Assembly (NCBI GenBank): GCA_023213395.1
Contig: CM041465.1
Coordinates: 210,125,741 to 210,189,740, forward strand
DNA from: Cycas panzhihuaensis
Taxonomy: Eukaryota; Plantae; Cycadophyta
Direction: 5' to 3'
Length of the DNA: 64,000 nucleotides
The position numbers were made by a program, and so were the translations under genes. Under the pieces are notes generated by a model that saw only the letters and a list, made by a program, of their open reading frames with translations, did no database searches and had not been told where the DNA came from. Positions 153 through 25,300 of the stretch are shown here, one piece after another; within the stretch, counting starts at the first letter, position 1; the number at the start of each line of letters is the position of its first letter.

Positions 153-163
153 TGGTATCAAAG
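153..163 (+). promoter_or_regulatory. Primer binding site, tRNA-Met(i)
   Basis: TGGTATCAAAG versus consensus TGGTATCAGAG, 2 nt after the LTR end. Confidence 0.85.
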
Positions 164-1206: not shown

Positions 1207-1243
1207 AGATTAGTGTAAATATTCATTCTCTATTATACATTAA

Positions 1244-1911: not shown

Positions 1912-2696
1912 AATTTTTTAGGGAGGTGAAAGCAAAACATTTATTTGATGTTTAGGAGTTTATGAACTTGTGTAACTTGTTGGGAACACCATAGCTCTAG
2001 ATTTCATTATTTATCAGTATTTTTGGATGGCTATATTAGGACCTAACATATTGTAGTTCCTCCTATATTTATTATACTATTATCATTGTTACTATTTTAG
2101 TAGCATGTTTGAATGATTTATAATTTTGTAGACGTATTTTCTATATTGCATTTTATTTTAGTTTATGCTAGATGTAGATATAATATTTTTAGGTTTGGAG
2201 GCACAAAAAATTTATCATTCTTATTGCCTTTTATCATGCTGTAATAGTTTGGAGGCACAACTAATTTGCTCTCCATATTACCATTAGTAATGGCACTTTT
2301 CCTTCTTATGAAAGATGGCATACTTCCTTTATATATTTATTTTATAGCTAGTGTTTTACCTAATGAGTGTATTAATGGTTGTATTTCTCCTTATATATAG
2401 CAGTACAGATGTTTGACAAAATGTCTAACTTTATGGTATGTATCTAGTTAGGTAGTTCGATATGGTCCTAAGATACGTGCCAGATTGAGATTTACTCCAT
2501 GCTGATGAACCACGTATATGAAGACATTGCCTAGACAACTAGTGGATGTTACAACTAGTCACCCATGTGATCTAATGGATGGTGATATCTTTATAGGATG
2601 TCATCAACTTTTTCCAATGAATTAGATTAATGGTTGAAGAATATAAATTATATTTAATACAATTTTTTATTATAAAAATTAAATATTATGAGGAGA

Positions 2697-3030
2697 TGTT
2701 AGAAGATAATATTTAATTTTAGGTTAGATATTTAATGTCTTAGGTTAAGGGTCCTTTAGTCATTGTTGTGGTTAGTTACAACTTAATGTTATGACTTCTA
2801 TATATGTGAGGTCATTTATTCTCATACTATTTTATAACGTATTTATATATTGATCATATAAGATGTCATGTGTCATCTTACATGATCAACCCCTTTGTAT
2901 TCCTATCTTTGTAATGAATTAATGCAAAAATTATATGTACACACTCACTTTTTAATACATTAATAGAAATATATCATTTTTTGTATGATTCATTTTATTT
3001 TTGTTATTTTTAGTGTGTACATTGTTAACA
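2697..3030 (+). repeat. 3' LTR (334 bp, TGTT...AACA)
   Basis: Follows the purine tract and matches 1-150. Confidence 0.85.
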
Positions 3031-5620
3031 ATGTTTATATATTTTCTAAGGATATTTATCATTGTTTTCCTTGATACATTATAATCTATAGTAGGATATG
3101 GGAGAAACACCTTCAACACCTAAAATTAGTATTATCAACACTAAGTACCAATAAAAATTTGTATAAAGAGATCTGAATGTAGCTTTGAGAGACAAATATT
3201 ACACTACTTAGGGCATATAACATCTCAAGAAGGGATAAAGATTATTTTGACTAAGGTACATACCATTATTGATTAACTAACTCAAAAGAATATCTCAAAG
3301 GTTTAAGGAGTTTTAGGACTTATTAAGTATTATTGAAAATTCATGAAGGGATATGCCAAAAATTCTAGGGCCATTACTAGATCCATGTAAAATGAATAGG
3401 TTCAAGTAGGGGGAAACAACAAATCAAAGTTTTACTAAGATTAAGAAAGTGATTAGTATTTCTCCAGTATTGGTAATACCATTTTTTTACAACTATTCAC
3501 AGTAGAATATGATACCTTAGGGATAGGAGTTAGGAAAACCCTCCTTTATAATGATCAACTAATTATGTCTAAAAGTAGGAAACTAAGCTTATAGGAATAA
3601 GCCAAGAATACATATAACAAAGAAATGTTGGCCATACTTCATGCGCTAGCTAAATGATGACATCACTTGCTTGGAAGTAAGTTCATAGTCAAGATTGATT
3701 ACCAAAGTTTTGAATACTTCTTATCATAATCTAATCTATCTAAATAATAGTAAAATTAGGTTTGTAAAATCTAAGACTATGACTTTGAGATATAATGCAA
3801 AAAGGGCAAAGAAGCTATCATAGTAGATGCTCTCTAAAGGAAATATAGAAAAGGAAAATATGAAACATTAATAGTCGCATAACCCACATGGGTAGAAGAA
3901 CTCCACTAAGCATATGCAAGCAACTTAAAATTTATTAGAAGGATTGAACAATGTAAAGAAGAAACAACCTAGCAAAATTAGAAGACTAATGACAACAACC
4001 TAATGTATAAAGGTAGAATATAAATCCCAAAGGACCCAAAATTTAGGGAAAGGCTGCTAAAGGAATTCCACTAGACTTTGCTAACAAGACATCCTAGGTT
4101 TTCTAAAATATATGAAAGGATAAGAAGATCATTTTTCTGGAAAAGGATGAAATAAGACATCTAAATATTCATAGCAAAGTGTAAGATATATTATAAATAA
4201 AAAATTGAGTACACATAATACCCTAAATTGTTACAACCTATATCAATTCCACAATAGAAATAGAAAGAGATTTCAATGGATTTTATTATAGGCCTACCCA
4301 AGCTAGAGGGGAAGGACACCATATTAACAGTAGTGGATTGCCTCACGAAATATAGTCACTTTGTACCTATGTAATTTGACTTCAATGCTCTTTGAGTAAT
4401 AAAAATATTTATGAAGAATATATGTAAACTTCGTAGGTTTCTTAAGAAGATCATATTTAATAGAGATACTAAATTTACTAGTAACTTGTAGAAATAACTA
4501 TTTAAATTAATAAGAATAGAGCTTGCTATGAGAATTACATACCATCCTCAAACAAATCAAACAAACAAAGGTTGTTAAAAAACGTTTAAAAGCATACTTA
4601 CACTATTTTGCAAGAGACAACTAGACTAAGTAGGTAAAATGGATTCATCTACTAAAATATTGGTAGAATATAACTTATGATGCAATAATCCAGAGATCCC
4701 CATTCATGGCATTATATAGCTACTAACTTCTAATAGAAATTGACTATATCTAAGTAATTACATGAGTACTTGTTGCTTAAGAATTAATCCAACAGTCTTA
4801 TTAGATATTTAAAGAATTAAAGAATAATTATAATAATATAAATGATAGGATGAAATAACAGGCAAATCAACACTTATTTGAGCACTCTTTTGACATTAGA
4901 AATTAGGTATATATACATCTAGAACCCTATAAGTAAGTATCACTACCATAGTAAGAAAATTTTAAACTCAATTTGTGATTTTATGGGCTTTACCAAATCT
5001 AAAGGAGTGTAGAGGAAGTGGCACATACCCTCAACTTATAACGTCAAGGTAGGATTCATAATGTCTTCCATGTTTCTAGTTTAAACAAAAAGTTAGGTCC
5101 TAATATTAGTCTTACCACTAAGTTACCAATCATGAATGGAGGAGGAAAGATTATACTTGAACCTTAAACCATTATTGAAATGCAGTAAAGACAACTTAGA
5201 TCTTGGACAATAATTGAATACTTAATTAAATAGAAAGGCTTACCAAGAAAAGAAGCAATATAAAATTCATAAGATCTTATCAACAACCACCTTGAGCTTT
5301 GTGGAAAAAACTCCTTTCTTAATAAGGGAGGGCATATTATTTTTTTATAATCCAAGAAAATATGAATTCCAAATAGTATTAAAAAGAATTAAAATAAATC
5401 TTAATCTTAGAAGATACCAACTTCACATGGTATTAAATAGGATTAAAATAATATAACAAATTACTATATAAAGGCTTACCCGTTAGGCTTTATGATCATG
5501 AGTTTATTTTGATTTGAAATTTATTCCTTTGGGTACCCTTAAGGACAAGGATGCTCTTTCTATGGTTTTTTATTGTAATTAAAGTAATTTTCTTTCTATT
5601 TTAGTTTTGAGTTCATCACA
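3031..5620 (+). mobile_element. Degenerate Ty3/Gypsy chromovirus: RT C-terminus, RNase H, integrase, chromodomain, 3' LTR (~5335-5620)
   Basis: Remnants of FIIVFLD/IYS..W.KHLQH (RT), YNKEMLAILHAL (RH), [11 protein letters not shown] (INT), IEYLIK*KGLP (chromodomain); PPT AAGGGAGGGC at 5324-5333. Interrupted in RT by the 1-3030 element. Confidence 0.85.
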
Positions 5621-5639
5621 ATAGTTATAATTGGGCAAT

Positions 5640-5875
5640 TCACAACATAATATAAAAGCTACCATCTGAAGCATGCTTAGGTTTCTAACTTTACTTACCC
5701 ATAGAACTAGCCATGCCACAACAAAAGCTTAGGTCAATAGAAGAGGTTAAATAAGAAGCAAAAAAAATTCTTAGAGAATAACTGATAAATGCAAAAGCAA
5801 GTACATAATATATTATTAAAAAGCCAACAAAAATATAGGGAAATATATGACTTACATTGATAAGATCATGATTTC
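5640..5875 (+). mobile_element. Degenerate Gypsy integrase, left part (split by a LINE)
   Basis: Continues after the LINE TSD at 21155 into GPF-type integrase sequence. Confidence 0.55.
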
Positions 5876-7937
5876 TTTTTTTTGATATGGTATAAAATGA
5901 AGGGGTTTAAAAAAGGACCCAACCCTACTATATAATATGCCTCTTAGCTATCAAAACAACTATGAAAAGCTCATGGCCTAGCTATCCTCTACCCTCAAAA
6001 GCCCTACCTAACCCATCCCTACCACGACAAGCCCAATGGTTAGATCTAATCCCCCACATCGGAAATGACTTCTAAATCTTTTTTAACTAGACTCAAAATC
6101 TCTTCTGGGACCTCATCTCTCTATACCCAAGTCCCCTTATGTATTACCCCCCAGTTAGCCAATTTATCAACTACACCATTCCCTTCTCTATAAATGTGTT
6201 TCACCTGAACACTCTCTCTACCCTTAAGGGATTCTTAGGCATCTCTAATCATAGTTGTAACTTTCCAATCAGATTCTACCTCTCCTCTAAGCATATTTAT
6301 CATATTTAATGAATCTCCTTCTATAATCAATATATTAAAGACTTCCTCTAGGGCCATTTCCAGTGCCCTCTACATAGTTACTAACTTTGCCTTATGGTTT
6401 ATTTGCTGCCCATAATACTCTGCAAAAGCCCATATGACTCCCCCTTTCAAGTTATTGCATATACCATCTCTTCCTATCTCCATTGGATTTTCTTTAGTTG
6501 CCCCATCAAAATTAATTTTCACCCAATTATCTAGGGAGGAACCCAGGTGCATTGCCTACTCACTCCCATGATAACTTTAGGCCTCCATATCCTCCAATTC
6601 TCCAATACAATTCCTTTTAACTCTAATTTAAAATTCTCTTATTTGACATTAACTATCTCCACCATCATAACACAGATAATTCCATGGAGCCTAACTTCAT
6701 CCATTTGCTTCTCTTGAAATATTCTTCTATTTCTCTCCTTTTATAAATTCCACATCAACATTGGCAAGGAAATTTGCCAAATATATACCACAATCCTACA
6801 TTTGAAGGGGCTTTTTCAAGACATCACCTGCTCTTTGAGTGTTCTCAGGAACACCCACTCCATGCCAAATTGGACCCAGATAAACTTCCAAATGTTCCTA
6901 AAGTAAGAGCAATGAAGAAGGATATGATCCGTTGAGTCCTCACCCTCCTGATATAACACACATCTATTGACCATCGCGAAGTCCCTCTTCTACAAAGTAT
7001 TCATAGTCAAAATTTTATTCCTCAAGCATAACCACAAAAAGATTGCCACTTTGGGAATCAATCCAATTTTCCATACTCCTTCTAATAAAGGGTTCTTAAG
7101 AGCCGCCCCCTCTTGACAAATAAAAGGACACTCTTTTTTCACCATATAATTCCTAGAAGGGGAGAGGGGCTACATTATAGAATCAACCTCATCTATTTTG
7201 GAATATAACATAAAGCTATCTCTTTTTTAAGGGCTTCTATATAATCCCTTATACCTTGATCCCCCTGCAATTCCTCAAAAGTTCTATAGCTCTTGGTCTG
7301 ATCTTGTCCTACTAAGTAATCTTTGACCTTTACTCCATAAGTTCTCTCACATAGGTCTTGCATAGGACCCATATCTGGCCTCCTTTTCAACTGAATATGA
7401 CTGCACCACATGTCTTCTTAGAAATTTATAGTAGCTCTATCCCCCTAGTTCCATTGCACTCCTGAAACAAGTATCTATCTCGATTGAAGCATACTTCTCC
7501 ATATTAGAGATCTTGATGAAACCACAGTATCATCCTTTAAGATTTTCTTTCCCCAAAGATATTTTTGGGATATAATTCTTTTCCATAGCCCTCCTTCTTT
7601 CTTAGCAAAAGGCCACCCTAATTTTACCACTAGGGCACTATTAAAAGAGGCCAGTCTTCAGATATTCAAACCACCTGTCCATTTGGTGAGGCAACCTTTC
7701 TCCCATGCCACTAGATGGATCTTATCCTTCTCCTCAACTCTAGACCAAAGGAATATTTTCTGAATGGATTTTAGAGTCGATATAACTTTAGACAGGATCC
7801 TAAATATTTACATCATATATATTAGAATACTTTAGAGTAAAGCAGATAATAGTTGGGCCTTGTTCACTTGACTTAGTAGGAAACCCTTCCACCGAGCCAA
7901 CTTCCTCTACATCTGATCTATGATAGGGTTCCAAATC

Positions 7938-8286
7938 AGATGGAGCTTGGGGAGTAGAGTGAGACTTTAGAACAAACGCATTTTGAGTATAATAGTGATT
8001 TTCGATAGTTGGCGGTATTGATAAACACTTGGGAGGTATTCCCATCCCTTAAATAATGAATTCCGGGGAGGCATCGAGTGGCATCACCCTAGCTGCATAT
8101 TAACTAATGTAAATTCAAAATATATTAAAAAATTAACAATAATAAATGAAATACGTACCTCAAGAAAGTGGTGTTAGGTCTAGGCAGCTATTGAGTGGCT
8201 CAAGGTGCCCTAGGGGCCCCTTAAAGGTGGCTTTGAGGGGCCCTAAGTGCACATGTGCACATACCACATTGGGATTATTCCCAACA
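7938..8286 (-). repeat. Copia 3' LTR
   Basis: About 89% identical to 16809-17156 by manual count. Confidence 0.93.
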
Positions 8287-8299
8287 TTCTCCCCCATAA

Positions 8300-11200
8300 G
8301 CCCAATGTGTATGACTCCCAAATTGTCTTTGAATTTCTCAAATTTGATTTTCCCAAAGCCTTCGTAAAAATATCTGCTGTTTGATTTTCTGTGTTGTAAT
8401 AAGTCAACTCTATCTCGTCTACTTGTACAAGTTCCAGAATGAAGTGGCATTGAGTTTTAATATGCTTTGTTCTGCCATGGAATACTGTATTTTTGGCCAT
8501 TTGAATAGCGCTTTGATTGTCACACCAAATTCTAGTGGGACCTTGCTATTTAATTTGAAAATCCTGTAAAAGTCTTCTTAACCATATTGATTCATAGGCT
8601 CTTGACACTGCAACTTTATACTCTGCTTCGGCTGTGGATAAGGAAACAATATTTTGTTTCTTTGTACTCCAAGCTACCGCTGCTGATCCCATACTAAATA
8701 CATAACCTGTGGTAGATTTTTTATCATCGACATCACCAAATTTAATCAATCTGTAACTAGTTAACTGAAATTTAGATGTAGCTTTGTAGTATAACCCAAT
8801 ATCTGGAGTCCCTTTAAGGTATCTAAGGATTCTTTTAGCAGCTTTCCAATGAGATATCTTTGGATCCTGCATAAATCTAGACACAACACTTACCAAATAT
8901 GTTATATTAGGTCGAGTAGAAGTTAAATATATTAGGCTGCCAATCAGTTGTCTATAGAGAGTGGGATCAACCGAAGTCAAGTCATCTGTCTTAGAAAGTT
9001 TGATTCCAATTTCTGCTGGTATTGTCAATGGTTTATAGTTTGTCATTTTGAATCTTTGTAGAAGATCTAATATATATTTACATTGAGAGATAAATATTCC
9101 TTATTTATCTTGCTAAACTTCTAATCCTAGGAAGTAATGCATAAGGCCTAAGTCTGTCATCTCAAATTCCTTACACATAGCATCTTTAAATTGATTTAAA
9201 AGATAGGAGTCATTTCCAGTATAGATTAAATCGTCCACATAGAGTCCTATAATCAATATCGAATTTCTCTTAATTAAGGTGTATAGATTTGGATCTGCTT
9301 GAGATCTTTCAAACCCTTGATCTTTAAGATACTTGTCTATACGGGAATACCAAGCCCTGGGTGCTTGTTTTAGACCATATAGTGCATTCTTTAATTTGTA
9401 CACTTTGTTTTCTTCCCCCCTGGCTTCAAAACCAAGAGGTTGAGTGACATAAATATCTTCTTTGACATAACCATTTAAGAAAGCACTTTTTACATCCATT
9501 TGATAAACTTTCCAACCCATTTGGGCAGCTAAACTTCATATCATGCGAATAGATTCTATCCTACCGATTGGGGCAAATGTTTCTATATAGTCTATGCCTT
9601 CTCTTTAGGCATAACCTTTAGCAACTAAACGAGCTTTATATTTATCAATGGAGCCATCGGAGTGGAACTTAGTCTTATAGACCCATTTGGTTCCAATAGC
9701 TTTCTTCTTTGGTGGTAAATCTACAAGTTCCCAAGTATCATTCTTAATGATAGACTTATATTCCTCTTTCATGGCCTTCTGCCAGCATTCATATTGTTTG
9801 GCCTCATCAAAGGTTTGAGGATCATGAGTTTCGAATAGCTCACTCATTAGGGCAAAGTTGACCTTTTGTGAGCATGTAGATCTTCTATTGTTATCTAATA
9901 TATTTCCTAAGTTATGGTTACGTTGAACCCATTTGGGTAGATGTTGTGATAGAGGTTGAGATGATGTTTCTTCCCTAGTGGGTTCCTGAATATTTCGCCA
10001 CATAGGAGGCACATAATTAGATTTATTTGATGTGTCAAATTTAATGGCAATGTCCTTCTGTTGTTCTTGATTATTTTGGTAGTAGTTTTCTTCTTGAAAT
10101 TTGATGTCCCTACTGACTATAACTTTTCTTGATTTCAGATCATAAATTTGTAGGATTTTGATGATTCACTATATCTAATAAAGATACTTTTGATACTATA
10201 GTCATCCAATTTAGTTCTTCTTTGGTCAGGAACATGGGCATAGGCTAAACATCCAAATTCCCTAAGGTGATGTATACTAGGTTTATAACCGGTCCATGCT
10301 TCTTCTAGAGTTTTCCACCTAAGTGTTTTGGTGGAACATCTATTAAGTAGGTAGACGACTGTATGAACTGTTTCAGCCCAAAAATCATGGCCAAAGTTTT
10401 TATCTTTAAGCATACATCGTGTCATTTCTACGATAGTTCTATTTTTCCTTTCCACTACACCATTTTGTTGTGGGGTGTAAGGGTTGGTAAGTTGTCTCCT
10501 AATCCCATGATGGATACAATAATCCCTGAAAGTATTAGAGGTAAACTCTCCCTCATTATCTGATCTTAGAGAAACGATATGATATCCACTTTGTCGCTCA
10601 ACGAAGGTTTTGAAGTCAACAAAGTGGTCGAAAGCATCAGATTTATATTTTAGAAAGAACACCCATGTCTTTCTTGTAAAGTCATCAATAAATGTGAGAA
10701 AATACTTGGCACCTGCCAATGAGGGAGTAGTCATTAGTCCATAAATATCTGTGTATACTAGTTGAAGTGGGGCAAACACTCAATGGCTAAAATCCAGAAA
10801 GCTTTCTCTATGTTATTTGCCAAGAAGGCATCCCTCACATAACTCTTTATTGACATCAATAGGTGGTAAACCATTAACCATATCTAATCTTTTCATAAGA
10901 GATAAACTATTGTAGTTAAGATGACCAAAATGTCGAAGTCATAAATCACTATCCATAGTAGTTGAGGTTCTAAGGGCATAGGTATCTGAAGGGGTGAGGG
11001 TAAGCTTAAATAAATGATCTTTAGTCATTATACCTCTAGCAACAATAGCTTTATTTTTTCTTTTATTTTTGATGACATATTCACCATTGTTAAAAATCAC
11101 CTTATAATCTTATCCCATCATCTGTCCTACCGATAGTAAGTTTTTCCTTAAAGCAGGGACATATAGAACATCATTCAAGTATCTATATTCATTAATATCA

Positions 11201-12533
11201 GTCAACAAGGCAATGTTACCTTTCCCAATCGATTCACGAGAAGTATTGTCTCCAAACATGATTGACCCCTTTTTATTTTTATCTAAAGTTTGAAATAAAT
11301 TTTCTTTATGGATCATGTGGATTGAGCAACCTGAATTAATATACCAACTATCATCCTCTTCTTCCTTGGCGAAAAAACTAGATAGAAATAACCTATTATT
11401 AATTTTAGATTCTGATGAATTTGATGCATGTCCTCTAAGGGGTGGTCCATGTTTTGAAAAATATTTATCTTCAGTGTGACCATTTTTATGACAATAAGTA
11501 CAATATAATTGATCTCTTTTTTCATAACCGAGGCTTCGACTCCTTGAGTGAGAATGATTAATATTGAAAGATCTCCCACTTTCCTCATAGAATTGATGAG
11601 GGTTGTGTCTTAGTTGGTTATCATGATAGTTTTGAGTTAATCTTAAAGGTTATGAATTCCTATGACAATGCAGACAGCAAGGATGATTCTCAACTTGTCT
11701 TCATTGGTTGGGATTTCTTAGAGCATTAGAATTTCTTGGAGGGTTTTCATATTGTTGGGGTCCTCCTTGTTTATTTTGGTGAGGGGCTCGATATCGTGGA
11801 GGATCTTGTCTAGGTTCGTTTCTAGGATTTCCATCTTTTCTCATTGGAGGAGATTCCTTTTGTTTTGAGGTTCCTACTTGAGGGTTAGATTGAATGCAGG
11901 TCTTTATAGCAAATGCATGTTCTAAAGTTTCATTTGCATTTTGTTGCTCTTCTATAGACATGAGCATAGCACTAAGTTGTTCTACTTTGAGGGAGCTTAC
12001 ATCTTTTGATACGCTAATACTAGTAGCTACCATTTCAAAATGTCTTACAGCTCCTACACATCTAAGGATTCTTTCAGCTACCCTTTGTTTGGTTAGGGTA
12101 TCCCTAAGTGACCTCATTTGGTTAACGATATCTTGGACTTTGGTCATGAATTCAGTTACTGATTCATGAGGCATCATACGTAAATTTTAAACTTACTTCT
12201 TAAGTTTTATAATTTAGAGGAGGCGGCTCCTTCATATATAAGTTGTAAAGTGTCTTAAGCCTCCTTGGACTTAACGAATTCACTGACTCGTAGAAATACA
12301 TGATCTTCTAATGCACAAAAGATAAGAGCTAATGCTTCGTTATCCTTTTTTATATTTTCTTTGTATGTAACTTTTTCTGCATCAGTTAGATTTAGTCCAA
12401 ATTCATTGTAACTGGTTCTCACTATATCCCACATGTCGTTTGCTATGAGGATGGGCCTCATCCTCTTACTCTAGTTAAGAAAATTATTTCCATCAAATTT
12501 TGTGATAATCATGTTCCCAAAACTAGCCGTCAT
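8300..12533 (-). pseudogene. Copia gag-pol (gag/UBN2, protease, GAG-pre-integrase, integrase, RT, RNase H), disrupted
   Basis: Starts MTASFGNMIITKFDGNN; motifs LRKNLLSVGQ, FIDDFTRKTW, TPQQNGVVERKNRT, YKARLVAKG, QMDVKSAFLNG, LYVDDL, STAEAEY, ADIFTKAL; several stops and frameshifts. Confidence 0.95.
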
Positions 12534-15452
12534 TTTGAATGAAATATCAAAATATTAAATCTAAATATTAAAAAAAATATTTAAATTTAAAAATTTTAAA
12601 AAGGTGTAAACATAAAATTTATTTCTAAATATATTCCAAAGTTTTCCCAAAGTTTTGAATAAGTGAACTAGGACCTATAAAGGCTACTAGGCTCTAAGTT
12701 TAAGTTTCTCCTAGGGCAACCTTCGATCGTTAGTCTATCTAGTAGCGCCTGCCCACAGATGGAAAAACAGGGACCCAATATACCGGTACGTGAGCACTAG
12801 GCTCTATATATCTCAGTACACAAGCTACTAAGAAGGCTTTTACACCTCCTTGAATTGTTAGTCCACGTGCGCCAGACTTATGCCTAACGATAGATCTAGT
12901 GATAAAGGTTCTCGAACCAAAGCACTCACCCTCTCCAGGTCTAGCCTTAGTATCCAAACACCATAAAATGAACAGGTTCTACAACTCAGCCTGCCACCGA
13001 TTACATCTGATAGCTAATGGCTGTCCTCATCCAATATGAGTAGGCCGATTGGCGTGTGTAGGGTGGTAACTTCAGGGGTCTTAATTGTTCCCCTTACAAC
13101 GCTGGAAAAATATGGTGGTTCAATTCAAAATTATCTTATTTAATGTGAAAATTAAACTAATTAGCAATGTGGTCTTACTTAGAAAAAAAAGTTCCTTTGA
13201 TATAATAAAAAAAAAACTAGAAAGTAAAATAATATGCTCTAAGCAAGATGAAATAAATAATAAACTTTTGAAATGAATAAAATCTTATTTTTTTCAAAAA
13301 ATATAATACTCTTCAAATGGATGAAATATGCCTTTGAAAATAAAATAAATTAAATGCAATTTTTATAAGTGCAAGAAAAAGATGATATTTTTCAATAATA
13401 ATAAATAAAAAAATAAAAAACTTTTAATAAATGTATACTTTTCAAATAAATGACACACTTGTGATATAAGATTTCAAATACACTTTTGAAGTATAATGAT
13501 AAATAAGAAAACTTTCAATAATTATGCGTTTTAAAGTAAACTTTAAAATATGAATATAACAAGAATCCTTTTCACTTATACAAAGCTGAAATAAACTTGA
13601 AATATAAAGAGTTTTCAACCTTTAATTTCTCAAATGAGTAAACATAAATCTTCAATGCAAGAAAAAATGACTTTCTTTTTTAGTATATAAAAAAAACTTT
13701 ACCTTGAGGAAGATATATACAGCTGAGAAATGAAATATATGTATGTATATTTTTAGTTGCTTTATAAATAATTTCTGTTACTAAACAACTTAAAAATACT
13801 TATATGAAGGTCAAGTAGAAACCTTGAACATATATTATGAACAACCAATGAGAAATAAAATAGAATTTTTTAAAAAAAATTTGAAGGGCAAGCCTATTAG
13901 GATGTACTTGTATGCTCAACTTTGATAGCTTGAAAACTACTAAACAATGTCAAAATAACTTGAGATTGTACCAATATGTAGATTAATAAAATATGAATCT
14001 AATAGAACTGACCATTTTGAAAACGGGTTCCAATAAGTCAAGATTTGAATGATTTAAAGGTACAGACCTCCTTTTGAGGCCTAACAGGAGCAAGAAGCTC
14101 AAAATTGCATAAAATTACTAATAAAACTATAGAAAATGTTGAAAACTGATCAAATATGTTTTGTAAAACTACTAAATATATGCGAAAAATGACAGATTAA
14201 GGTTATTAAGTAGTCCAACTTTAATGGATTTGAAAATAAGTAAAAACACCTTCAAATGTATGAAAAACTATGTCAGTTCGAAGGGGAATGAGTTAGCTTC
14301 CCAACGAAACTGATGAAACTGAATTTGGATGTCAAATAGAAAAGTTATAGTAAAAACAGTAACAAGTACCTTTATGTATAAATGTTAAAAAAAGTTAAAA
14401 ACTACTAAAATGTCAATTTCAACGATTAAAATAATGATTAAAATAAATTCTAAAAAATAAAATAAAATATGGTTAATGAAGTTTGTTGAACGTAGATCAA
14501 TGTAGAATAAATCTAGGTAGAAAATAGTTTTTCGATAATAAAATACAATCAGTTCAAAAAATGATTTTGTAAAAAGTTAGAAAAAGGCTAAAAAATGGGC
14601 TAATTGACTTTAAATCAACTGAAACGGGGTCAAGTCAGCACCAAATTAGTCATATGACCAGTCAAAATTATTCTACAGAAAACTTCTGATCTAATGAAGC
14701 TGGTTTTGTTTGAAACCGGTGAGCCAATGAGGAGTTATGGAAAAAAAAAAAATGCCAATAACCCTATATAAAATTAAAAAATAAAAAATAACAAGTTTTT
14801 AAAAAGTTCGTTAGCCCCTTTGCAATGGCTAACAGTCACGTGGGAATGATCTTATGACCAGGGGATATTATCAGAAGGGGTTATATTCTTTAAGTGGTCG
14901 GATTTCAAATTTTATGTAATAAAATTAAATTTTTGTAACTTTATATAAAAAAACATGTAAAAAACATAATAGTTTGAGAGCAAATGGCTGCCGCCATGTA
15001 TGTACAACCGAGACGCACCTATTCAAATGAAGAATATACCAAAAAGAGATTCAATATGAAGAGTCTATCAAACAAAATAAATATATTATATATATATATG
15101 TATATATAAATAAATAAATAAATAACGGTAAATGAGATAATGCATTGCGTAAATGAAGGGCCTCTCACACTTCCGCTGCGTTGGATTGCCACACACAGAG
15201 ACAACAAACAGCTGCTGAGTCCTCTTATTAAAGTAAAATATATTTAAAAAAAGAGAACGGCTATAAGGAGAAGAATAAAAAATGCTACACAGAGAAGCTG
15301 GAACGGATACTATTGTTGTATTGGCTCAAAATCAATCAAAAAATGCCTGCCGATATTCCAGTCGAAGGACGCGAGTCCGATCTCGCTGCAACTACTCTTG
15401 AGAATCCCGCGGAAGACGTTGAAAACGTTGGAACTGCTCTTGAGAATCCTGC

Positions 15453-15563
15453 GGAAGGCATGGACTTGTGCAAGCAGCTTATATAGCAAAGGACTTGCGG
15501 GAAATTCTGGGTATCCAAGGGATGAATGTGCATATACAGGAAGCAGATCTAGCCACTTCACCA
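15453..15563 (+). pseudogene. MFDR: Captured fragment 1 of mitochondrial NADPH:adrenodoxin (ferredoxin) reductase
   Basis: [37 protein letters not shown] matches GRRGPVQAACTAKELREILGI...+HI.E.DL..+P. Confidence 0.85.
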
Positions 15564-15773
15564 CTTTTTAGGTTTGATAAAAATGACAGGAAGCGATTAT
15601 TCCACTTGATGAATGGACTTCCTACAATATTTGAGGTTGTTGCTAGAGCTTCAAAGAAGCAAGTAAAAGAAAGATCTATTGTGACCAACAATAGTACTAG
15701 CAAAACGAAGTCTGGGGGAAAGGTGCGAGCATCTAAATCTCAACCAAAAATTTCCAAGTTATCATCACCCAAA
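15564..15773 (+). pseudogene. Captured fragment of an Alfin-like PHD protein (end of PAL domain plus linker)
   Basis: [55 protein letters not shown] matches [32 protein letters not shown]+S.V.N. Confidence 0.9.
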
Positions 15774-15980
15774 GATGAGGAGGAAATGAAAAAAAGTAGA
15801 AGTCAGAGGCATGTATATGAGCTATTTTGCAAGATTGCTAGATCAACGTCTTGCCAACAAATCTCAGCTCCTGAACGTGACCTCCACTTTGTTTTCTTCA
15901 GAAAGCCAGAAAATATTTTACACTCTATTGATGAAAGAAGAGTGGCTGAAGTGCGCTTGGAGAAGAATGTTTTGAAAGGA
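15774..15980 (+). pseudogene. MFDR: Captured fragment 2 of adrenodoxin reductase, continuing fragment 1
   Basis: [20 protein letters not shown]...[16 protein letters not shown]...[13 protein letters not shown] matches DEEEMK.SRI.RRVYELLSK...[12 protein letters not shown]. Confidence 0.87.
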
Positions 15981-16794
15981 GAACGGCTGTCGAGGGAGAG
16001 ATGATTTAACTCAATCTCAATGGCTCCCACGGTGAAGGCAATAACAAAGAAAAAAGACAGCCAAGAACGAAGGGGTGGCGAGGTGCGTGGAGAAATTGCA
16101 AACCCGAAAGGGTAGACCTTCGTCTATCAGACTACTGGCGTCCCCCAAATATTTGGGGGCGGGCTAAGATGTGCGTGGAGCCTTTGTTCAGATCTTGGCA
16201 AAATAACTGGCCAAACTTACAGTGATGCACCTACTGCTTAACCAACAGAACGGGGCTTACAACCACCGTTGCCCAATTTGCTTAGAATGACTGTGAAGAG
16301 AATGGCTTCCAGAAAACCAACAAAAATATATGTGCAAATTATAATTTATATAAGATGGGTGTAGGATTAATTATATTTGACAGGTAATGAAGGGGGGAAG
16401 AACGGCTCCATGGTAGACAATGGAAGATAGACAAGCTTTGGTTTATAGAACAGATCTAAAGAAACGCCTTACAGCACAGCCACCAAACAAAAAATGGTCC
16501 TTTGAATATATTGACGAAGATATATTAAATAAATAGCAAAATATATATTTGTATTTAGAAAAAAAACACGAAGAACCTGGTAAACTTGTTTGCAATGCTG
16601 AAGAACCTGGTAAACTGGTTTATAATACTGGCTTCAAAGCATGACAACGTCTTGCACAATGGACGAAACTCCAAACCGTTTTCTCCAATGAGCAGGTGTG
16701 TTTGCTAGGATCTCAACTAGTAGTCATATGCAAGTGTTTTGCTGAATATATGAGAAGCTAAATCGAATATGAGCAAAATATCAACTCCAACCTT

Positions 16795-16806
16795 GCTCTG
16801 ATACCA
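16795..16806 (-). promoter_or_regulatory. PBS, tRNA-Met(i)
   Basis: Reverse complement is a perfect TGGTATCAGAGC. Confidence 0.92.
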
Positions 16807-16808
16807 AA

Positions 16809-17156
16809 TGATGGAGCTGGAGGAGCAAAGCAAGACTTTAAAATGAGAGAATTTTGAGTATAATGGTGATTTCCGATAATTGGCGGTGTTGATAAACACC
16901 TGGGAGGTATTCCTATCTCTTAAATAATGAATTCCGGGGAGGCGTCGAGCGCCATCACCCTAGCTGCACATTAACCAATGTAAATTCAAAATATATTAAA
17001 AATTTAACAATAATAAATGAAATACATACCTCAAGAAAGTGGTGTTAGGTTCAAGCCGTTGTTAAGTGGCTCAAGGTGCCCTAGGGGCCCTTAAAGGTGG
17101 CTTTGAGGGGCCCTAAGCGCACAGGTGCACTTACCACATTGAGAGTATTCCCAACA
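16809..17156 (-). repeat. Copia 5' LTR
   Basis: TG...CA ends, adjacent PBS, matches 7938-8286. Confidence 0.93.
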
Positions 17157-20100
17157 AAATCTTCCTCAACATCTTTCCTATAAATAGGGGCATCCCTAAA
17201 TAAATAGTGGGTAGTTTTCAAATAGGAATATCTAGGATTCTATTGATTTTCCTTTACATCATTTCTTTGATGTTCACAAAAAAGATGCTACTCTTATTCA
17301 AATTTATCTTTTGATTCATAGCTCTCTTGAAATTCTCAAGCCCTACTTTTATAGTCTGAGCTTTACTAAGGGTAGCCTTCCTTAATAGAATATTATCATC
17401 TATGAATTGGTGATGGACGGTATTAGCAATTTTAGAGGTAAGCTTAATCCTCTCTACCACTCCCTTTCTCCTAGCCTCCTCTATCACTCTTCCTAATAAC
17501 TCTACCATAATTATAAATAGATAAGGGGATAGAGGATCTCCTTGTCGAATCCCTCTATGCTTGGGAAAAAACTTGTCGAGGTGCCATTAATTATAACAGA
17601 GTATTAGGGCTTAGAAATATAGTTGACCACCCACTCCCTCCATAAGTCTCTAAAGCCAAATGCTTGGAGACACTCCATTAGATAGTTCCATGACACCCTA
17701 TTATAAGCTTTAGACATATCAATCTTAACTATCATCCCTGGTTTCTTCCTCTGATGGGCAGAGTGGATCATTTCATATATTACTATGATGCCATCCAGGA
17801 TTTGTCTCCCTTTCACGAAACTATCTCGATTAAGAGAAACAATCAAGGGAAGAATAATCTTTAGTCTATTTGCCAATGCTTTTGCTAGGATCTTATATTT
17901 CACATTATAGAGGATAATTGGCCTAAACTCCTCTATCAACTTCGTACCTTCCTTTTTTGAAATCAACATTAGAAAAGTGGCTTGCCACTCTCCCAACATT
18001 TTCTTATTCTCTTAAAACTCACTTAGGGCCTTCATTAAATATTCTTTTATAATATCCCAGTATTCCTGAAAGAAGTATGGAGGAAAGCCATTCGAACTTA
18101 GCGCTTTATCCTTTTTCATCCTGAAAACTGCCCTTTTTACTTCCTGAAGTGAGAACAGTGCCTTTAAAAATATGTTCTACTCATCATCCACCAACTTGGG
18201 GATTAAGTTCATAAACTCTTGCCTGGTCATTATGTCTTGACAACCATGCTCCTCAAATAAGTCCTTAAAATACTTTATCACTATATTCTTAATATCTTTC
18301 CCTTTGTTGGTTTCTTCTCCTTCTCTATTGTACAATTTATTTATTTAGTTACAGGCCATGTGCTTTAAGGTCGTCATGTAGAAGAACTTAGTAGTCCTTT
18401 CCCCCTTCACCAACAAGAGGGCCCTCAACTTCTGTCTCTAGAAAATCTCTTCTTTAATCAGGACTTCCTCAAAATTTCTTAAGAGATCTCTCTCAGCTTG
18501 ATCCAAGATCCGGTATCTTCCCTCTAGTTGGATCCTTGCCTCTATGCTTTTTAGCTCTTTAACTATCTAAAACTTGGCTTTAAAAATATTCCCATGAACC
18601 TTTTTGTTCCACTCTTTCACCTGTCTTTTCATCCAACTTAGTTTTTTCAAAAACCTATACATTATGCACCCCTCAATCAAAATCTTCCATGACTAATTAA
18701 TTAGATCCTTAAGACCTAGATGCTTTGTCCATATTAGTTTGAACCAAAAAGGAGTGTCTATATGTTTCTTAGTAATATCAGAGTCTAACAATAATGGGAA
18801 ATTATATGACACTATCTTAGGAAGCACTTCTAACTTGATGTCATTATGATGGTTGGCCCATACATAATTTATCATCATCCTATCTAGCCTTACCTGTATA
18901 TGGTGATTCCCTAATCTCCTATTTGACTAGGTGTATTTTATCCCCCTAAGATGAATATCCATTAAACCTCTTTTTCGAAGAAAATCTCCTAGGACCATCA
19001 TACTCTTTGTCCACCCCTCTTGTCCCCTTTTTTTCTCTCTAGGGGATACGATAATATTGAAATCTCCAATGACAAGCCATGGACCTTGCCAATCTTTATG
19101 GAGCTCCAAAATCTTGTCCCAAAGGATTTTCTTGCCTTTCACAGATGTAGGAGTATAATATTAATTACCAGCCATTGAAGGTTTGTCTTTCTATAAGTTA
19201 ACCATATGGAAATGAAATGGTCATCCAAAACATAAGCCTCTCCCTGCCATTCCTTTGGGTTCCAGAGAACAACTAACCCCCCTGAACCTTGTCACACATC
19301 ATTGCCATCTCCATTGTCCTCTAAATCTTATTTTTGATAGCTACCTTATTATCAAATGATAATTTAGTTTCTTAAAGTAGGATTATATTTGGTTCCAGTC
19401 TCATACATAAATCTTTCACTACTCTCTGCTTTGAGGGGGCATTTATACCCCTAATAATCGATGAAGCGATCTTCAGTTTTTACTCTTTAACCTCAGGCCC
19501 TCTCCTCCTCCCTCCCTTAGGGTACACTAGCTCCCCTAATCAACTTAGGTTGCTACCTTCCTTTCCCTAACCATATTTAGGGTGGTTCTACCTATCCTTT
19601 TTTCACCTCCTAGATCTGGGCCCCTATGCAAGCCCACTCCCCTCTGCTCCTCCTGTGAGTCTTTCTCTCTAATTTTTCTAGATCTATCTTCCTTCTCCAA
19701 CGCCTCCTAACTTCCTACTATACTAAATGGTTTACCTTAAGGATATTTAACCATATCCTCTAGAGCTCTAGAGGATTCAACCCCCTCCTTTAACTCCTCT
19801 AGCAGTGGCTCTTGATTGCTTTTCTCTCCCCTCTCTTATTGGGAACGTTCCTCACCTTCCTAAAAAAGGGAGTTCTCAACATCCAGATTAATTTCATCCA
19901 CCACACCTTCAATCTCCCTAGGGGTGCAAATATGCCTCTTTATTTCCTGGGTTAGCTCTACCTCCTTCTCTTCTCCCTCTCCCTTCTTTATCTCCCCTGG
20001 ATAATTTTGAGGAACATGGTCATACCGTTTATAAACTGAACGTCTAACATTATCTAGTTTGTAGACTAAACTTTGTTCCTAGCTCCATTCCTCGGTTTCA

Positions 20101-21171
20101 ATTATTACTCAATTCAGAAGAGATTTATCCAATTTAGCTAAAATGCAGAATTTGGCATTTATCAATTTAGTCATGTTCTTTGTTGCTGAGTTAATAGCTA
20201 ATAAAGGTCTTATAGCTTTCACTACCTCCTTAATCACATCTAGATCCTACACTTGAAGAGGAAACCTCATCATCTGGACCCATACAAGGATCTATTTTAT
20301 AGTTGACACCTTCAGGTTAAAATTTAGGTGCCATTTTCCAAGAAAATGGCTTTTTTACCAAAAATCCAAGTTGATTTCAGGAGGATGTTGACCATGTCTT
20401 CTTGATTTGTGAATTTAAATAGAACACCCTTGGGGAGTTCCATAACCTCCACTTGGTTCCTGATCCTCCATCTATTAACTAACCATTTTCTTATGGGGTC
20501 TAAGCTAGGTCTTGGCCCTAAGAATCTACCCACCAAGCTATGCTCCTAATATTTCTTAGTCTGCTTAGTTAATTTCTTCAGGATGAGGATTTTAATAATG
20601 TCATCTTGAATGATAGGGTTTATATCTAAGGGTTATGATTCACCATTCTTTAAGACTTCCAAATAAGATCTCCTAAAAGGGGACTTTTGAGTCTAATTAG
20701 ATATATTTGTTTCTGCCATATTCACCATGAAAAATGTGGCCTAACTATAAAAAACATTAATGAAATCAACCAGACAAAATACCAAATAAGCACCACATCT
20801 CACCTAGAATTAAATTTTCTAGAACTTCAGCTAATAAAGCATTCAATCTATCTGTCCTTACTTCATATTTCTGGCCTTCAACAAACTACTTTTTAGGCCT
20901 TAGCAGGAACCCTAAGGATTGCCCATCTCCTAAGCCTTTCCACTTAGCATCTCCATCTTATGTGTTACCTCCTCGAATCCCCACATTCAAACCTAGATTA
21001 ATCTATTCAGAATGCTAAATGCTATTGCGCCACCCAGATACTAGCCACAGCTTGAGAGTGCTTTGCTCACTGCTAGCCCTTATGCCTTCAAACCCTAGCC
21101 ATCGCTTGTGAGTCCTTCGTGTAATGCTCATCCATAATTCTACAAAACTTCTACGATAAGATCATGATTTC

Positions 21172-21857: not shown

Positions 21858-22349
21858 TGTAGGATGCCCTTTCTCTCTTCTAAAATTAACTTCCATTCAT
21901 GATAGTCATATATCTATATACTCTCTGTTTAAAAAATTAACTTCATCTCTTCTAAAACAAACTTCCAATTCATGATAATTATTATATTTGTATACTCTCT
22001 ATTTAAAAAACTGACTTCCATTCATGGCATTTATTACATATATACTTAGGGCTTCCTGACCCATTTATAATAATCATTTTTAGAAGAGATTCAAGGTTGC
22101 CATTTTTAGCTTCTAGTTGGAGACCACAATTGGAGGGTATCTTGCCTTGAAGAGGGGATTTGTTGTAAGATTTAATAATTGTTATTTTCATTTGATACTA
22201 ATTTCACAAGGATTATTTAGTGCATTTGTAGAGATTTACTTTAGATTTGTGCATTCATGGATCTTTATTTTTGTTATAAATTACTTTAAATAACATGTAT
22301 AGGTGTCATTTTGTTGATTTGGGTGTGAGTTCCAATTGGAGTTCCCATA
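21858..22349 (+). repeat. 5' LTR with an internal ~75-bp tandem duplication
   Basis: Matches 27068-27564; the TCTCTTCTAAAA...TTCATGATA unit recurs in both LTRs. Confidence 0.88.
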
Positions 22350-25300
22350 AGTGGTATTAGAGCTTCATTGTTAAGGGTATTGAGTTGGAAAAGAATTTTA
22401 AAAAATCCTAATTTTTAGACATACAGTAACTACCCCTACAACCATTCCATCTACAAACACAATTATTTTTTGTAAGTTGCATACTATTTTTAGCCAAAAA
22501 AGGCACTCTAGAAGCGAATTTCATAATGCAAATAACTAAACTTTTTCCAAGTGTAAAATTAAGATGTAGCAAGACACTAGTAACTAAACAAAATTATGAA
22601 CCATCAGTTAATCACAATAGAGGATATCAATAGAAGAATAGATGACCTAAATGACTACATGATTCAAAGACATAACCAACTATGGAAAGTGGTAACTAAT
22701 AAATTCAAGGAATTTGTAAAGTAATTTATTGGCAAAAATAAGGCCTTGTAAATAAAAGGATTAATAGAAACTCTAAAGCTTGAAGGTAATAATAAGAATA
22801 AAGACTTTTATCATGGAGAAAATTATTACTATGACAATGAAGAAATAGAAAAAAGAGATAAACTTAGACCCAACTATCATCTTAAGAACTCCAAATTCCT
22901 TTCAAAGAAATTTGACCCTGATAAGTCAAGGGATATCCAAAGCTAGATTATCTAGATAAATCTATATTTTCAAATGCAACTAGGATTGGTAAAAGATAAA
23001 ATATTGGTTGTATCCCTTCATTTATGTAGGAAAGTAATCAAATGGTTTTATTGGTGGAACAAGAATTATTGTGGAACAAATCACTATAATAGGGATTTCC
23101 TAAAATCTTTATTAATAAAATAGCACGAGGACACTTGTTGTAAGGATTATTTCTCCTTACTAATATGGTTATAATAAACTAATTATCTAAGCATATAGAA
23201 AAAAATTTTAAAATCTACAAAGGATGATAACATCACAAATTGACCTATACTTATTACTAGAAGTGTATATTGGAGGCCTCAAAAGCACTATCAGATTCTA
23301 GCTTAAAACACTAAATGTAAGATCTATGAGGGAGCTAATTCTTCTAGCATGTAATATAGAAGCTAAATTCTAAGAAGCAAGATAGTATTATGTATGACAA
23401 AATAATCGCTCTAGACCTACATGAAATGGCAATAGATCCAATTGGCAACAACTTGAGAGAAAGGCCAATCCACCTTTAAGAAAACAAAAGGAAGGCAATG
23501 TTGTAGAAAATAGGTTGTCAAAGGTAGAACACCTTTAAAGAGGAACATATGTTAATTACAATGACAAATGGAGTCATGATCATAAATGTCTAGCAAAGAA
23601 AGTCTTTATGCTTAATAATGAAGACATGGATGTGCCAATACAAGAGGAGCAACTATAGGAAGGGCAATCACTAATGGAGGATGAAGCAAAAATAGAGGAG
23701 TTACTAAATGAAATAGATCTTGAGAATGTGTAACTATCAATACAAGCAATCACAAGAATAATAAATATATATCAAACAACACATTTTGAAGGGAGCATTA
23801 TGAATGCCAAAGTATCAATCTTAGTTGATAGTGGCAATACACATAATTTTATTAATAGGTAAATGAGAGTTAAATTGGGACTCCAAGTCAAACCAGTAAA
23901 ACAATTCCAAGCAACAATTACTAATGGTAATAATATACCATGTAGAGGTTTTTGTGATAAGGTATACCTTTAGATCCTTGAATACTTATTAATCACATGC
24001 ATATTTTCCATACTTCTTAGAGGTATCAATATAGTGCTAGTCATACAATGGTTCTAAAACTTAGGAAATATAGTCACTAATTATAGAACATGCTTCATGA
24101 GTTTCTTCCAAAAATGGCACAAATACAAATTGCAAGCATCACCCATATCCCCCTCACAACTAGTCCTATATCACTGCATGGAAAATGTACTTAAGAAAAA
24201 TCTCTTAGTATATCTAATTACCTACTATAAGATCTTAATACAAGATATCCCATATGAAATTCAAGTTATCATAGACTAACATAATAAAATCTTTTAAAAC
24301 ATCCCCAGAGAGCTTACCCTACCTCATGGCAATGAGCATGTAACACATTTAGAACCTAGAGTTGCACCCATAAACATCTAGTCTTACACATATCCATACC
24401 ACTTCAAGAAGGAAATCAAACAAATCACTAAGGATTTACCTTAATAAAGGGCCATCATGTCTAGTTCTAATCCTTTTGCCTTTATAGTTATTCAGATCAA
24501 GAAAAAGAATGGATCATATTAAATGTATGCAGTTGTCATACTCTAAATAAAATAACAATAAAAAATAGATATTTGATACCATATATTAATGATTTATAGA
24601 TGAATTACATGGCACAAGTTCTTCTTTAGGATTGACCTCCGCTTTGGATATTATTAAATTCATATCAAAGATAAGGATGTATACAAGATAACATTTTATA
24701 CGCACAAAGGATAATTTGAATTTTGGGTTATGCCATTAAGGTTAATTTATGCATATGTAACCTTCTAATGCACTATGGATATAATATTTAATCCATTTAT
24801 AAAAAAAATTATCCTAGTATTTTTTGATGGCATTCTAATCTATAATCAAACATAAGAACATTTGTGGGAAGTACTACAGATTCTAGAAAAAAAAAATCTT
24901 TATAAACAAGTCAAAATGAACTTTTGGATAAATATAATTAGAATATTAGGGCCATATCATCACCTAAGACAGAGTCAAGATGGATCCCAAAAAGGTCCAA
25001 GCCATTATAAATTGGACTATACCAATGAATGCCATAGGTTTCATAAGTTTTCTAGGACCCACCAAATTCCTATGGAATTTTATTAACGGATATGCAAGCA
25101 TAGCAATACCCTTGATTGATCTCATAAAGAAGGAAACATTTAGTTAACATAATCTAGTAGAAAAGTCTTTCTAAGGATTAAAGAATACCATGCTCATAAT
25201 CCTCATCGTAGCCATGCCAAACTTCTATGAATTGTTCATCATGGAACGAGATGCATCTAAAGTAAGGTTAGGAATAATTCTTCTTTAAAACCAATGACAC

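Follow-up and report, generated by a model that had tools for sequence, protein, structure and literature searches.

This locus raises the question of how pieces of two unrelated plant genes came to share one open frame inside a retrotransposon, and whether that frame does anything for the cell. The window, i.e., the whole 64,000-nucleotide stretch of Cycas panzhihuaensis DNA analyzed here, contains on its forward strand an open reading frame of 186 codons plus stop (15444-16004; stop-free over 15444-16001 and bounded by the TGA triplets 15441-15443 and 16002-16004), which reads in order as MFDR (adrenodoxin reductase), Alfin-like, and MFDR again. Alfin-like proteins are chromatin readers (H3K4me3), and MFDR is a mitochondrial reductase. 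Capture of host mRNAs by LTR retrotransposons is known, and the described cases are in sense and usually replace element genes. The initial annotation had described the frame as an in-frame MFDR-Alfin-MFDR sandwich, antisense within a Copia leader. Both halves of that description proved to be real: the stop-free frame matches both parents, and the LTRs, primer-binding site (PBS), target-site duplication (TSD) and gag-pol of the surrounding element place it in the leader.

The host element is a minus-strand Copia, complete but dead, that spans 7938-17156 and is flanked on both sides by the TSD GATTT in minus-strand reading (7933-7937 at its 3' side and 17157-17161 at its 5' side; 5 matching bases at both LTR ends). 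The 3' LTR (7938-8286) starts with TGTTGG and is 88.5% identical over 356 nt to 16804-17156, which includes the 5' LTR (16809-17156), and the pair has thus diverged by 11.5% (K = 0.125). The PBS, TGGTATCAGAGC, is of the tRNA-iMet type (16795-16806, minus strand). The gag-pol region (8243-12461, minus strand) is broken into several frames, retains the gag, IN and RT domains (Retrotran_gag_2, rve, and RVT_2), and has its gag start near 12461, so that the chimeric frame lies between PBS and gag and runs antisense to gag-pol. A native leader module on the minus strand (14343-14969) has its counterpart at 33675-34301 in a second PBS-bearing leader (64% identity over 657 nt, E 5e-51); both copies have the same orientation and a similar spacing from a PBS-like site, the second of which is located at 35976-35987. 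No identifiable cargo was found in the second leader over 34302-35975.

Within the frame, the first MFDR piece (MFDR-N, GRHG...DLATSPL, 15453-15566) matches residues 212-247 of the 487-residue plant MFDR P0009. The Alfin-like piece (15567-15773), comprising the end of the Alfin domain and the linker, corresponds to residues 112-178 of 255 in the Alfin-like protein P0001 (pairwise E 1e-32), and matches the AL7 structure 5xvj (E 1e-4) as well as Pfam PF12165 (E 1.6e-4, profile positions 102-126 of 127 only). At the nucleotide level, 15567-15787 aligns without gaps to positions 803-1023 of the conifer-type Alfin-like cDNA L001 (80% identity, E 3e-55). The second MFDR piece (MFDR-C, 15785-16001) consists of the exon EEMK...LKG followed by about 8 codons that resemble the next exon; 15765-15977 matches P0009 residues 247-317 (51%, E 4e-15) and 15777-16001 matches the MFDR protein P0005 (51%, E 2e-21). 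An MFDR alignment past 16001 was sought and not found. Bovine adrenodoxin reductase (PDB 1cjc) aligns with both flanks, and the representative library contained 49 MFDR-type matches. Most of the enzyme is missing from the MFDR pieces, and the Alfin-like piece has no PHD finger, i.e., it does not show a complete Alfin domain with a C-terminal PHD.

The two joints of the Alfin-like piece differ. MFDR is collinear across the insert, with P0009 reading DLA(K)TP-A-DEEE and the chimera DLATSP-L-[Alfin]-DEEE, and the loss therefore amounts to zero or one codon, in agreement with the earlier observation that MFDR resumes almost exactly where it had stopped. At the return joint between the Alfin-like piece and MFDR-C (GATGAGGAGGA, 15774-15784), 8-11 nt are common to both parents, which share P-x-D-E-E at this position: the chimera reads GATGAGGA(G)GA, Alfin-like cDNAs read GATGAGGA[A/T]GA, and MFDR proteins have DEEE. 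The return microhomology that had been proposed for this (S/T)P.DEE region is thus credible. No microhomology is visible at the joint of MFDR-N with the Alfin-like piece.

Both parents appear to have contributed spliced RNA. The Alfin introns at DR|KRLF and GKV|R, which the initial annotation had pointed out, are present in the genomic Alfin-like contigs L007, L012, L013, L043, L046, and L048, and the Alfin-like piece of the chimera runs uninterrupted across both sites; the intron retention that had been named as a contrary sign is therefore absent. The MFDR pieces are continuous across at least two intron sites, ILG|I (within MFDR-N) and DE|EE, to which predictions that retain an intron or skip an exon point (P0032 and P0052 for ILG|I, P0015 for DE|EE); many genomic MFDR fragments end at LKG. 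Since the pieces of both parents cross intron sites without a break, the cargo derives from spliced mRNAs.

The Alfin insert lies at most 6 nt from the inferred MFDR exon junction DE|EE and both joints preserve the frame, as would be expected if a host transcript had already contained the sandwich and been captured as a whole, for instance one from an MFDR paralogue or pseudogene into which Alfin sequence had been inserted or a fragment exonised. This origin is nevertheless highly improbable. The MFDR-Alfin-MFDR architecture is absent among 5.8 billion clustered proteins (102-325 aa), where the three matches were plain Alfin-likes, and no relatives of the chimera were found in metagenome or viral contigs; piecewise protein searches returned one weak MFDR fragment and no match for the Alfin-like piece. 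Moreover, the 3' end of the Alfin-like piece has no usable splice donor and for MFDR exon b only a cryptic one could serve, and exonisation of an Alfin fragment in the DE|EE intron was discarded because the required donors are absent. A circular-RNA origin of the MFDR part likewise found no support, as there is no second MFDR-C end adjoining MFDR-N.

The chimera belongs to a longer antisense block of retro-copied host RNAs, a cargo of approximately 1.36 kb with approximate edges at 15207 and 16566, all on the forward strand. From PBS to gag, this cargo consists of a stretch that resembles the 3' end of an mRNA and has a short run of A, a piece without parent match, an RNase MRP RNA-like copy, MFDR with its Alfin insert, and a further piece without parent match. 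The 3'-end-like stretch (16408-16566) has a stop at 16534-16536, AATAAA at 16528-16533 and, 25 nt further, an A8 run at 16559-16566. The MRP-like copy (16068-16272) is 64 nt away from the chimera in the same orientation, and it aligns with the whole RF00030 model (1-266), including GGGGCUUA and AGUGAUGCA. Its score of 27.8 bits (E 3e-5) lies below the gathering score of 50, which is consistent with a decayed copy, and nothing else in the window matches Rfam at E <= 0.01, the further scans having spanned 1-12560 and 17500-64000. A USE-like element, CTCCCACGGTG, is found at 16024-16034, upstream of the 5' end of MRP by 34 nt, and would, if real, point to capture of the MRP piece at the DNA level or by read-through. 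The remaining pieces (15232-15483, 16005-16112, and 16242-16758) gave no Pfam or PDB matches, leaving about 500 nt without a parent.

Several short repeats mark the cargo. The 9-mer AGAACGGCT occurs three times on the forward strand, at 15254-15262, at 15980-15988 in the end of MFDR-C, and at 16399-16407. The flank of its first copy (15207-15297) is weakly similar over about 90 nt to 15938-16037, with a score above those of 500 shuffles and second in rank among 2,127 real windows, the first rank being a spurious purine-rich match; this likeness is suggestive only. A 42-nt tandem duplication (15384-15464, 32/39 identical) spans the joint of the 5' parentless piece with MFDR-N, and a 30-nt tandem duplication (16570-16629, 26/30 identical) is located at the PBS-proximal cargo edge. 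The idea that the AT-rich leader derives from an earlier copy of the cargo by hypermutation was dropped, as its score equaled the shuffle mean.

From the identities of the Alfin-like and MFDR pieces, their spliced state, their single orientation and their TSD-bounded position, we infer that the block was built by reverse transcriptase hopping between RNAs. The reading we prefer, with a probability of roughly 0.6, is that of a serial template-switch mosaic in the leader of the minus-strand Copia, in which the Alfin-like piece represents an out-and-back excursion, and which is now a neutral fossil. A reverse transcriptase would have copied host RNAs in a single run or a small number of them, jumping from template to template; it would have left the MFDR mRNA at GATGAGGA, which is also present in Alfin-like mRNA, used spliced Alfin-like mRNA as its template for about 207 nt, and then re-entered MFDR at the next codon. 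Microsimilarity-guided template switching by the reverse transcriptase of LTR elements, including the formation of multi-gene chimeras, is established (PMC5131818; for Bs1, PMC13317346). Read in this manner, the fossil would record at least five successive template choices, all antisense and near the PBS, among them one excursion that returned to its point of departure within one codon and one structured small RNA copied from end to end.

The enzyme need not have been that of the Copia. LINEs are abundant in this DNA, and the Copia itself is nested in one (RVT_1 at 17604-17999, zf-RVT at 6816-6974); a LINE reverse transcriptase could have generated a chimeric retrocopy by target priming at a genomic nick, with insertion by chance in opposite orientation into the already integrated leader. 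The AATAAA, 25-nt spacing and A8 at the 3' (PBS-proximal) end of the cargo resemble the end of such a product, and small nuclear RNA/mRNA chimeras made by LINEs, tripartite ones included, are known (PMC2104539). The U6/L1-type and Magnaporthe tripartite chimeras share with this cargo the serial jumps of reverse transcriptase, a structured small RNA copied to its 5' end together with mRNAs, and a single orientation (PMC2104539). However, those chimeras possess a poly(A) tract and a TSD and carry the small RNA at the 5' end, whereas here MRP is internal, the A-run is just 8 nt, no direct repeat of at least 10 nt was found at the cargo flanks, and the location is a Copia leader. A TSD and poly(A) of the chimera's own had been listed from the outset as signs against its origin within the element; neither a flanking repeat of that length nor a longer A-run was found. 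Together with a mosaic of at least five parts, these features make the LINE route unlikely.

The missing TSD around the cargo, the clean Alfin insertion with no MFDR sequence lost, and the presence of microhomology at one joint and not at the other would also suit repair. Filler DNA at chromosome breaks is established in plants and yeast, and fragments of host-RNA cDNA may have been end-joined as filler into a double-strand break in the Copia leader, with the Alfin fragment filling a break in MFDR cDNA. We consider this slightly less likely still than a LINE product, given that the identified pieces are all in one orientation and in the order of a single continuous polymerase run, that the MRP-like RNA was copied from end to end, and that the position near the PBS would be a coincidence.

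Where a template-switching reverse transcriptase did its work is a more tentative matter. One possible setting, which we would not put ahead of its alternatives, is the Copia particle itself, during plus-strand DNA synthesis just past the PBS; hopping at that stage would by itself place the copied host RNAs close to the PBS and in antisense. The earlier remark that antisense orientation is hard to obtain from simple co-packaging overlooks a simple candidate route, the copying of host RNA at the plus-strand stage. Captured genes in LTR elements are mostly in sense (PMC7264820), which counts against the reading preferred here. The idea that plus-strand synthesis after the PBS provides a second, orientation-reversing route of gene capture can be tested. 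An extension of it, in which the copying of co-packaged host RNAs behind the PBS is a regular feature of this Copia lineage, its members carry interchangeable antisense cargos, and the RNA of the active element acts as an antisense or RNAi trigger, seems improbable. If true, the RNA of the active Copia would have held hundreds of perfect-antisense bases against an H3K4me3 reader, a mitochondrial reductase, and RNase MRP RNA, while the Alfin sandwich and the three AGAACGGCT sites would mark where a nascent strand, tethered to its home template, kept coming back to it.

As to function, the cargo block is most probably a neutrally decaying fossil, neither a gene nor a silencing device. Under neutral decay the chimeric frame would survive with P = 0.28 at 6% decay, so that its openness provides no evidence of selection, as the initial annotation had already cautioned. 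The Alfin-like piece has a dN/dS of 0.23 at a dS of 0.66 relative to the nearest cDNA, from another gymnosperm lineage; the ratio is uninformative on selection because what it chiefly captures is how far the species have diverged. Positions at which the parents are invariant have been altered (GRRGP to GRHGL, FGFD to FRFD, VVTG to VVAR), and nothing suggests that the chimera works as a gene. The open frame, the surviving 27-nt exact match to a conifer Alfin-like cDNA, and the accepted idea that TE-borne gene fragments feed siRNA pools (PMC2773423) could be taken to favor a functional cargo, acting either through antisense silencing of Alfin-like, MFDR, and MRP by small RNAs or through a selected protein encoded by the 186 codons. 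Such a role is very unlikely: the LTRs are old and gag-pol is broken, the cargo is just 80% identical to the nearest cDNA, the PHD finger and most of the enzyme are missing, and no RNA run containing the stretch was found. The suggestion that the element RNA silences a chromatin reader is accordingly unsupported. For annotation, the locus illustrates that an open frame of 186 codons with two good domain matches can be pure debris.

Among known systems, maize Bs1 offers a close comparison in composition. The cargo of Bs1 is in sense, and most of its pol is missing. This LTR retroelement has transduced three pieces of host genes, which together form a hybrid ORF (Elrouby and Bureau 2001, 2010; PMC13317346); the same authors report that the ORF is expressed within the element as both RNA and protein (in PMC13317346). 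In both elements, several unlinked host genes have contributed intron-free sequence to one open frame, whereas the cargo of the present Copia is antisense, has been added to the leader with gag-pol kept, has a non-coding RNA among its pieces, and gives no sign of expression. The cases of Tan et al. 2016 (PMC5131818) resemble it in their partial host mRNAs between LTR-element sequences, their multi-gene chimeras, and the short sequences shared at fusion points. In those cases the retrocopy replaces part of an element ORF, and the model of minus-strand synthesis yields sense cargo (PMC5131818), whereas the present Copia loses nothing and has its cargo antisense and near the PBS.

Pack-MULEs and Helitrons, too, are mobile elements with mosaics of unlinked gene fragments that are sometimes joined in frame. 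What they capture is genomic DNA, introns included, and their termini are TIRs or Helitron ends, in contrast to the spliced pieces found here; such ends are absent, no long inverted repeats flank the cargo block, and capture by either type was rejected. Finally, the additional ORFs of Grande, RIRE2, and Retand are, like the chimera, open frames antisense to gag-pol in LTR elements, but they are conserved from copy to copy, lie after pol and before the 3' LTR, and are related to no host gene (PMC7264820), whereas the chimera sits in the leader and is built from two host mRNAs. A small LTR element at 2-3031 of the same window carries its cargo in sense, which indicates that antisense orientation is not a rule of this genome.

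The plus-strand stretch 15444-16001 forms a single open frame of 186 codons with a TGA on either side (15441-15443 and 16002-16004), and its three parts were assigned with independent tools. The first part (MFDR-N, 15453-15566, +) aligns with residues 212-247 of P0009, a plant adrenodoxin reductase (MFDR) of 487 amino acids, and with the bovine adrenodoxin reductase structure 1cjc from residue 195. The second part (15567 to approximately 15784, +) covers the terminal portion of the Alfin domain together with the subsequent linker, and was matched to Pfam PF12165 (E 1.6e-4), to AL7 in the PDB (5xvj, E 1e-4), to the Alfin-like protein P0001 in pairwise comparison (E 1e-32), and, at the DNA level, to the Alfin-like cDNA L001 over a gap-free 221 nt (80% identity, E 3e-55); the cluster of P0001 includes proteins from Pinus, Picea, and Ginkgo. 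MFDR resumes in the third part (MFDR-C, approximately 15774-16001, +), which matches residues 247-317 of P0009 (51%, E 4e-15) and, up to the final codon of the frame, P0005 (51% over 75 residues, E 2e-21), with 49 MFDR-type matches in the representative library. The MFDR part is nearest to a subset of fragment matches (P0005, P0008, and P0020) and not to the majority type represented by P0009. These affinities, and the mere quarter or so of sampled words present in the best-matching 5-Gb DNA runs, are in keeping with a gymnosperm genome of large size. DLAKTP-A-DEEE in P0009 corresponds to DLATSP-L-(Alfin)-DEEE in the window, and the in-frame MFDR/Alfin/MFDR sandwich proposed in the initial annotation was thus recovered, with both parents matched and MFDR collinear on either side of the insert. 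Judged from this alignment, the insertion would have cost MFDR one codon at most, and none if CTT at 15564-15566 represents the MFDR codon. The frame could also derive from a chimeric transcript that existed before capture, but a clustered-protein search found no protein of such architecture.

At the return joint, Alfin-like cDNAs read AA(A/G) GAT GAG GA(A/T) GA and MFDR proteins DEEE(M/L)K, and the 8-11 nt at 15774-15784 can be assigned to either parent, in agreement with the microhomology predicted for this joint. The SSPK that precedes it stems from Alfin (PPPK in the Alfin-like locus L004, PLSK in L001). Inspection of the MFDR-N/Alfin joint (15563-15567) revealed no visible common sequence. 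The in-frame state of the chimera requires no selection, because at the return joint the common bases encode identical residues in both parents, and the MFDR-N/Alfin joint would be in frame by chance in one of three cases.

Scanning metagenome contigs with P0001 yielded 59 plant loci, six of which were cDNA-like and many genomic. In six genomic loci (L007, L012, L013, L043, L046, and L048) the gene is interrupted after FDKNDR and after SGKV by introns whose lengths range from roughly 100 to roughly 1900 nt, which substantiates the two intron positions named in the initial annotation, and the chimera is uninterrupted at both sites (the second reads GGKVRAS). As the Alfin piece is unbroken over two real intron sites, it is spliced, and the mRNA origin suggested for this part holds. 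The MFDR intron sites were read from predicted proteins only. Proteins P0004-P0052 are short ORFs called on public plant genomic contigs and constitute an indirect MFDR exon map, intron positions being exposed because each ORF continues past the exon end for a few intronic codons until a stop is reached. For example, an intron is retained after REILG in P0032 and P0052, and between TPADE and EEMK in P0015; moreover, the exon KVYL...LG is skipped in P0037, and dozens of short genomic MFDR fragments diverge directly after LK(G). The window is unbroken at the sites deduced between ILG and I and between DE and EE, and probably also crosses the site after LKG, as suggested by its alignment to P0005, which is seemingly spliced there.

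The chimeric frame lies antisense within a minus-strand Copia element (7938-17156), of which the LTRs (7938-8286 and 16809-17156, -) are 88.5% identical (corrected distance K = 0.125) and both flanks carry a perfect target-site duplication (TSD), GATTT. The primer-binding site (PBS) TGGTATCAGAGC (16795-16806, -) is two bases off the LTR end, and the gag, integrase, and RVT_2 sequences (12461 to 8243, -) are broken over several frames. Copia inserted in a LINE, splitting it into 6370-7630 and 17254-20536 (-); RVT_1 and endonuclease-like ORFs now flank it on one side, whereas zf-RVT and RNase H-like ORFs are found at the opposite side. The leader, from PBS to gag, measures about 4.3 kb and includes a native module of approximately 630 nt (14343-14969) that recurs in the same orientation at 33675-34301 (-; 64% identity, E 5e-51). 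A second PBS-like site, TGGTATCAAAGC (35976-35987, -), has this module at a similar distance as in the first Copia, and the PBS-to-module sequences of the two elements are unrelated to each other; neither identifiable cargo in this interval of the second element nor an LTR pair for it within the window was found.

Besides the chimera, the cargo (approximately 15207-16566, +) contains an apparent copy of a non-coding RNA. On the same strand and 64 bases past the stop of the frame, 16068-16272 (+) matches the RNase MRP RNA model over its whole length (positions 1-266, 27.8 bits, E 3e-5), including the conserved stretches GGGGCUUA and AGUGAUGCA. The 64-kb window yielded no other Rfam match at E <= 0.01. 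The score falls short of the Rfam gathering threshold, as a decayed copy would be expected to do. A USE-like CTCCCACGGTG at 16024-16034, 34 nt ahead of the MRP-like 5' end, could be a chance occurrence or a remnant of the MRP gene promoter. The PBS-proximal piece (16408-16566) carries a stop codon and AATAAA near its end, with an A8 run 25 nt after the latter, and looks like an mRNA 3' end, of which Pfam and PDB searches did not identify the parent. The A-run would suit a chimeric retrocopy made by a LINE that landed in the Copia leader, but no TSD in the form of a direct repeat of 10 nt or more was found around the cargo, and the small RNA is internal. All identified pieces share one orientation, and in the direction from PBS to gag each cargo RNA runs 3' to 5', an order that would be the exact product of a polymerase copying RNA in one run.

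The cargo is more probably than otherwise (roughly 60%) a mosaic generated by template switching of reverse transcriptase and borne by Copia; a further alternative is that cDNA served as filler when a break was repaired. Template switching guided by microsimilarity is established for the reverse transcriptase of LTR elements, multi-gene chimeras included (PMC5131818; Bs1 in PMC13317346). In those cases the cargo is in sense orientation and replaces element ORFs, whereas the Copia cargo is antisense, near the PBS, and additive; according to a review, transduced genes are usually in gag-pol sense (PMC7264820). Within the template-switch reading, host RNAs may have been copied during plus-strand extension from the PBS, as RNA copied at this stage would be complementary to the sense strand of the element and the antisense cargo would be placed close to the PBS, although this detail is put forward tentatively and is rather doubtful. 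Elsewhere in the window, a short LTR element (2-3031, +; approximately 3 kb), which has PBS-like TGGTATCAAAGT at 153-164 and LTRs that measure about 150 nt and are 90% identical, has interior ORFs resembling pieces of ArfGAP, aspartic protease, and aminotransferase. As judged against its PBS, these ORFs have sense orientation; antisense cargo is therefore not universal here.

Three plus-strand copies of the 9-mer AGAACGGCT (at 15254, 15980, and 16399) are spread over 1.2 kb of the cargo, with an expectation of 0.13 for the whole 64-kb window and a count that was reached in 0 of 100 shuffles, and the three sites also resemble one another more loosely over about 20 nt. The 9-mer may stem from either MFDR or the native leader. 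Copy 2 is located within the final codons of MFDR-C, and the flank of copy 1 (15207-15297) displays a weak likeness to the MFDR-C end, which beat 500 of 500 shuffles and ranked second among real windows, below a spurious match. Tandem duplications of 42 nt (15384-15464, 82% identical) and 30 nt (16570-16629, 87% identical) were also detected. The former spans the joint between an unassigned piece and MFDR-N and is therefore younger than this joint; its two copies differ no less than the LTRs do, which, given the small numbers, weakly suggests that the cargo is as old as the Copia insertion. A nascent strand that repeatedly left and re-found one place on its template could account for the clean insertion of Alfin, the recurrent 9-mer, and the short back-duplications.

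Nothing indicates a functional role of the chimera. The Copia host is old and broken, parent-invariant residues are altered (GRRGP to GRHGL, FGFD to FRFD, and VVTG to VVAR), and the PHD finger, which reads H3K4me3, is missing from the Alfin piece. The view that the open frame is no significant sign of selection was confirmed by neutral simulation, in which the frame remained open in 28% after 6% substitution. The dN/dS of 0.23 (dS 0.66) mostly reflects divergence between gymnosperm lineages, and the stretch was present in none of the RNA sequencing runs searched. Over 27 nt the cargo is still identical to a conifer cDNA, so that small-RNA cross-talk may have been possible while the cargo was young. 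The chimera is a real and well-preserved case of a known process, unusual in that the cargo is antisense, PBS-near, and additive and includes a non-coding RNA and an exact out-and-back insertion; its interest is mechanistic. The window further contains an LTR pair at 21909-22203 and 27120-27414 (+; 80% identical, 5.2 kb apart), accompanied by PBS-like TGGTATTAGAGC at 22352-22363 (+), and a tandem array at 51825-52097 with a period of 29 nt and an inter-copy identity of about 70%.
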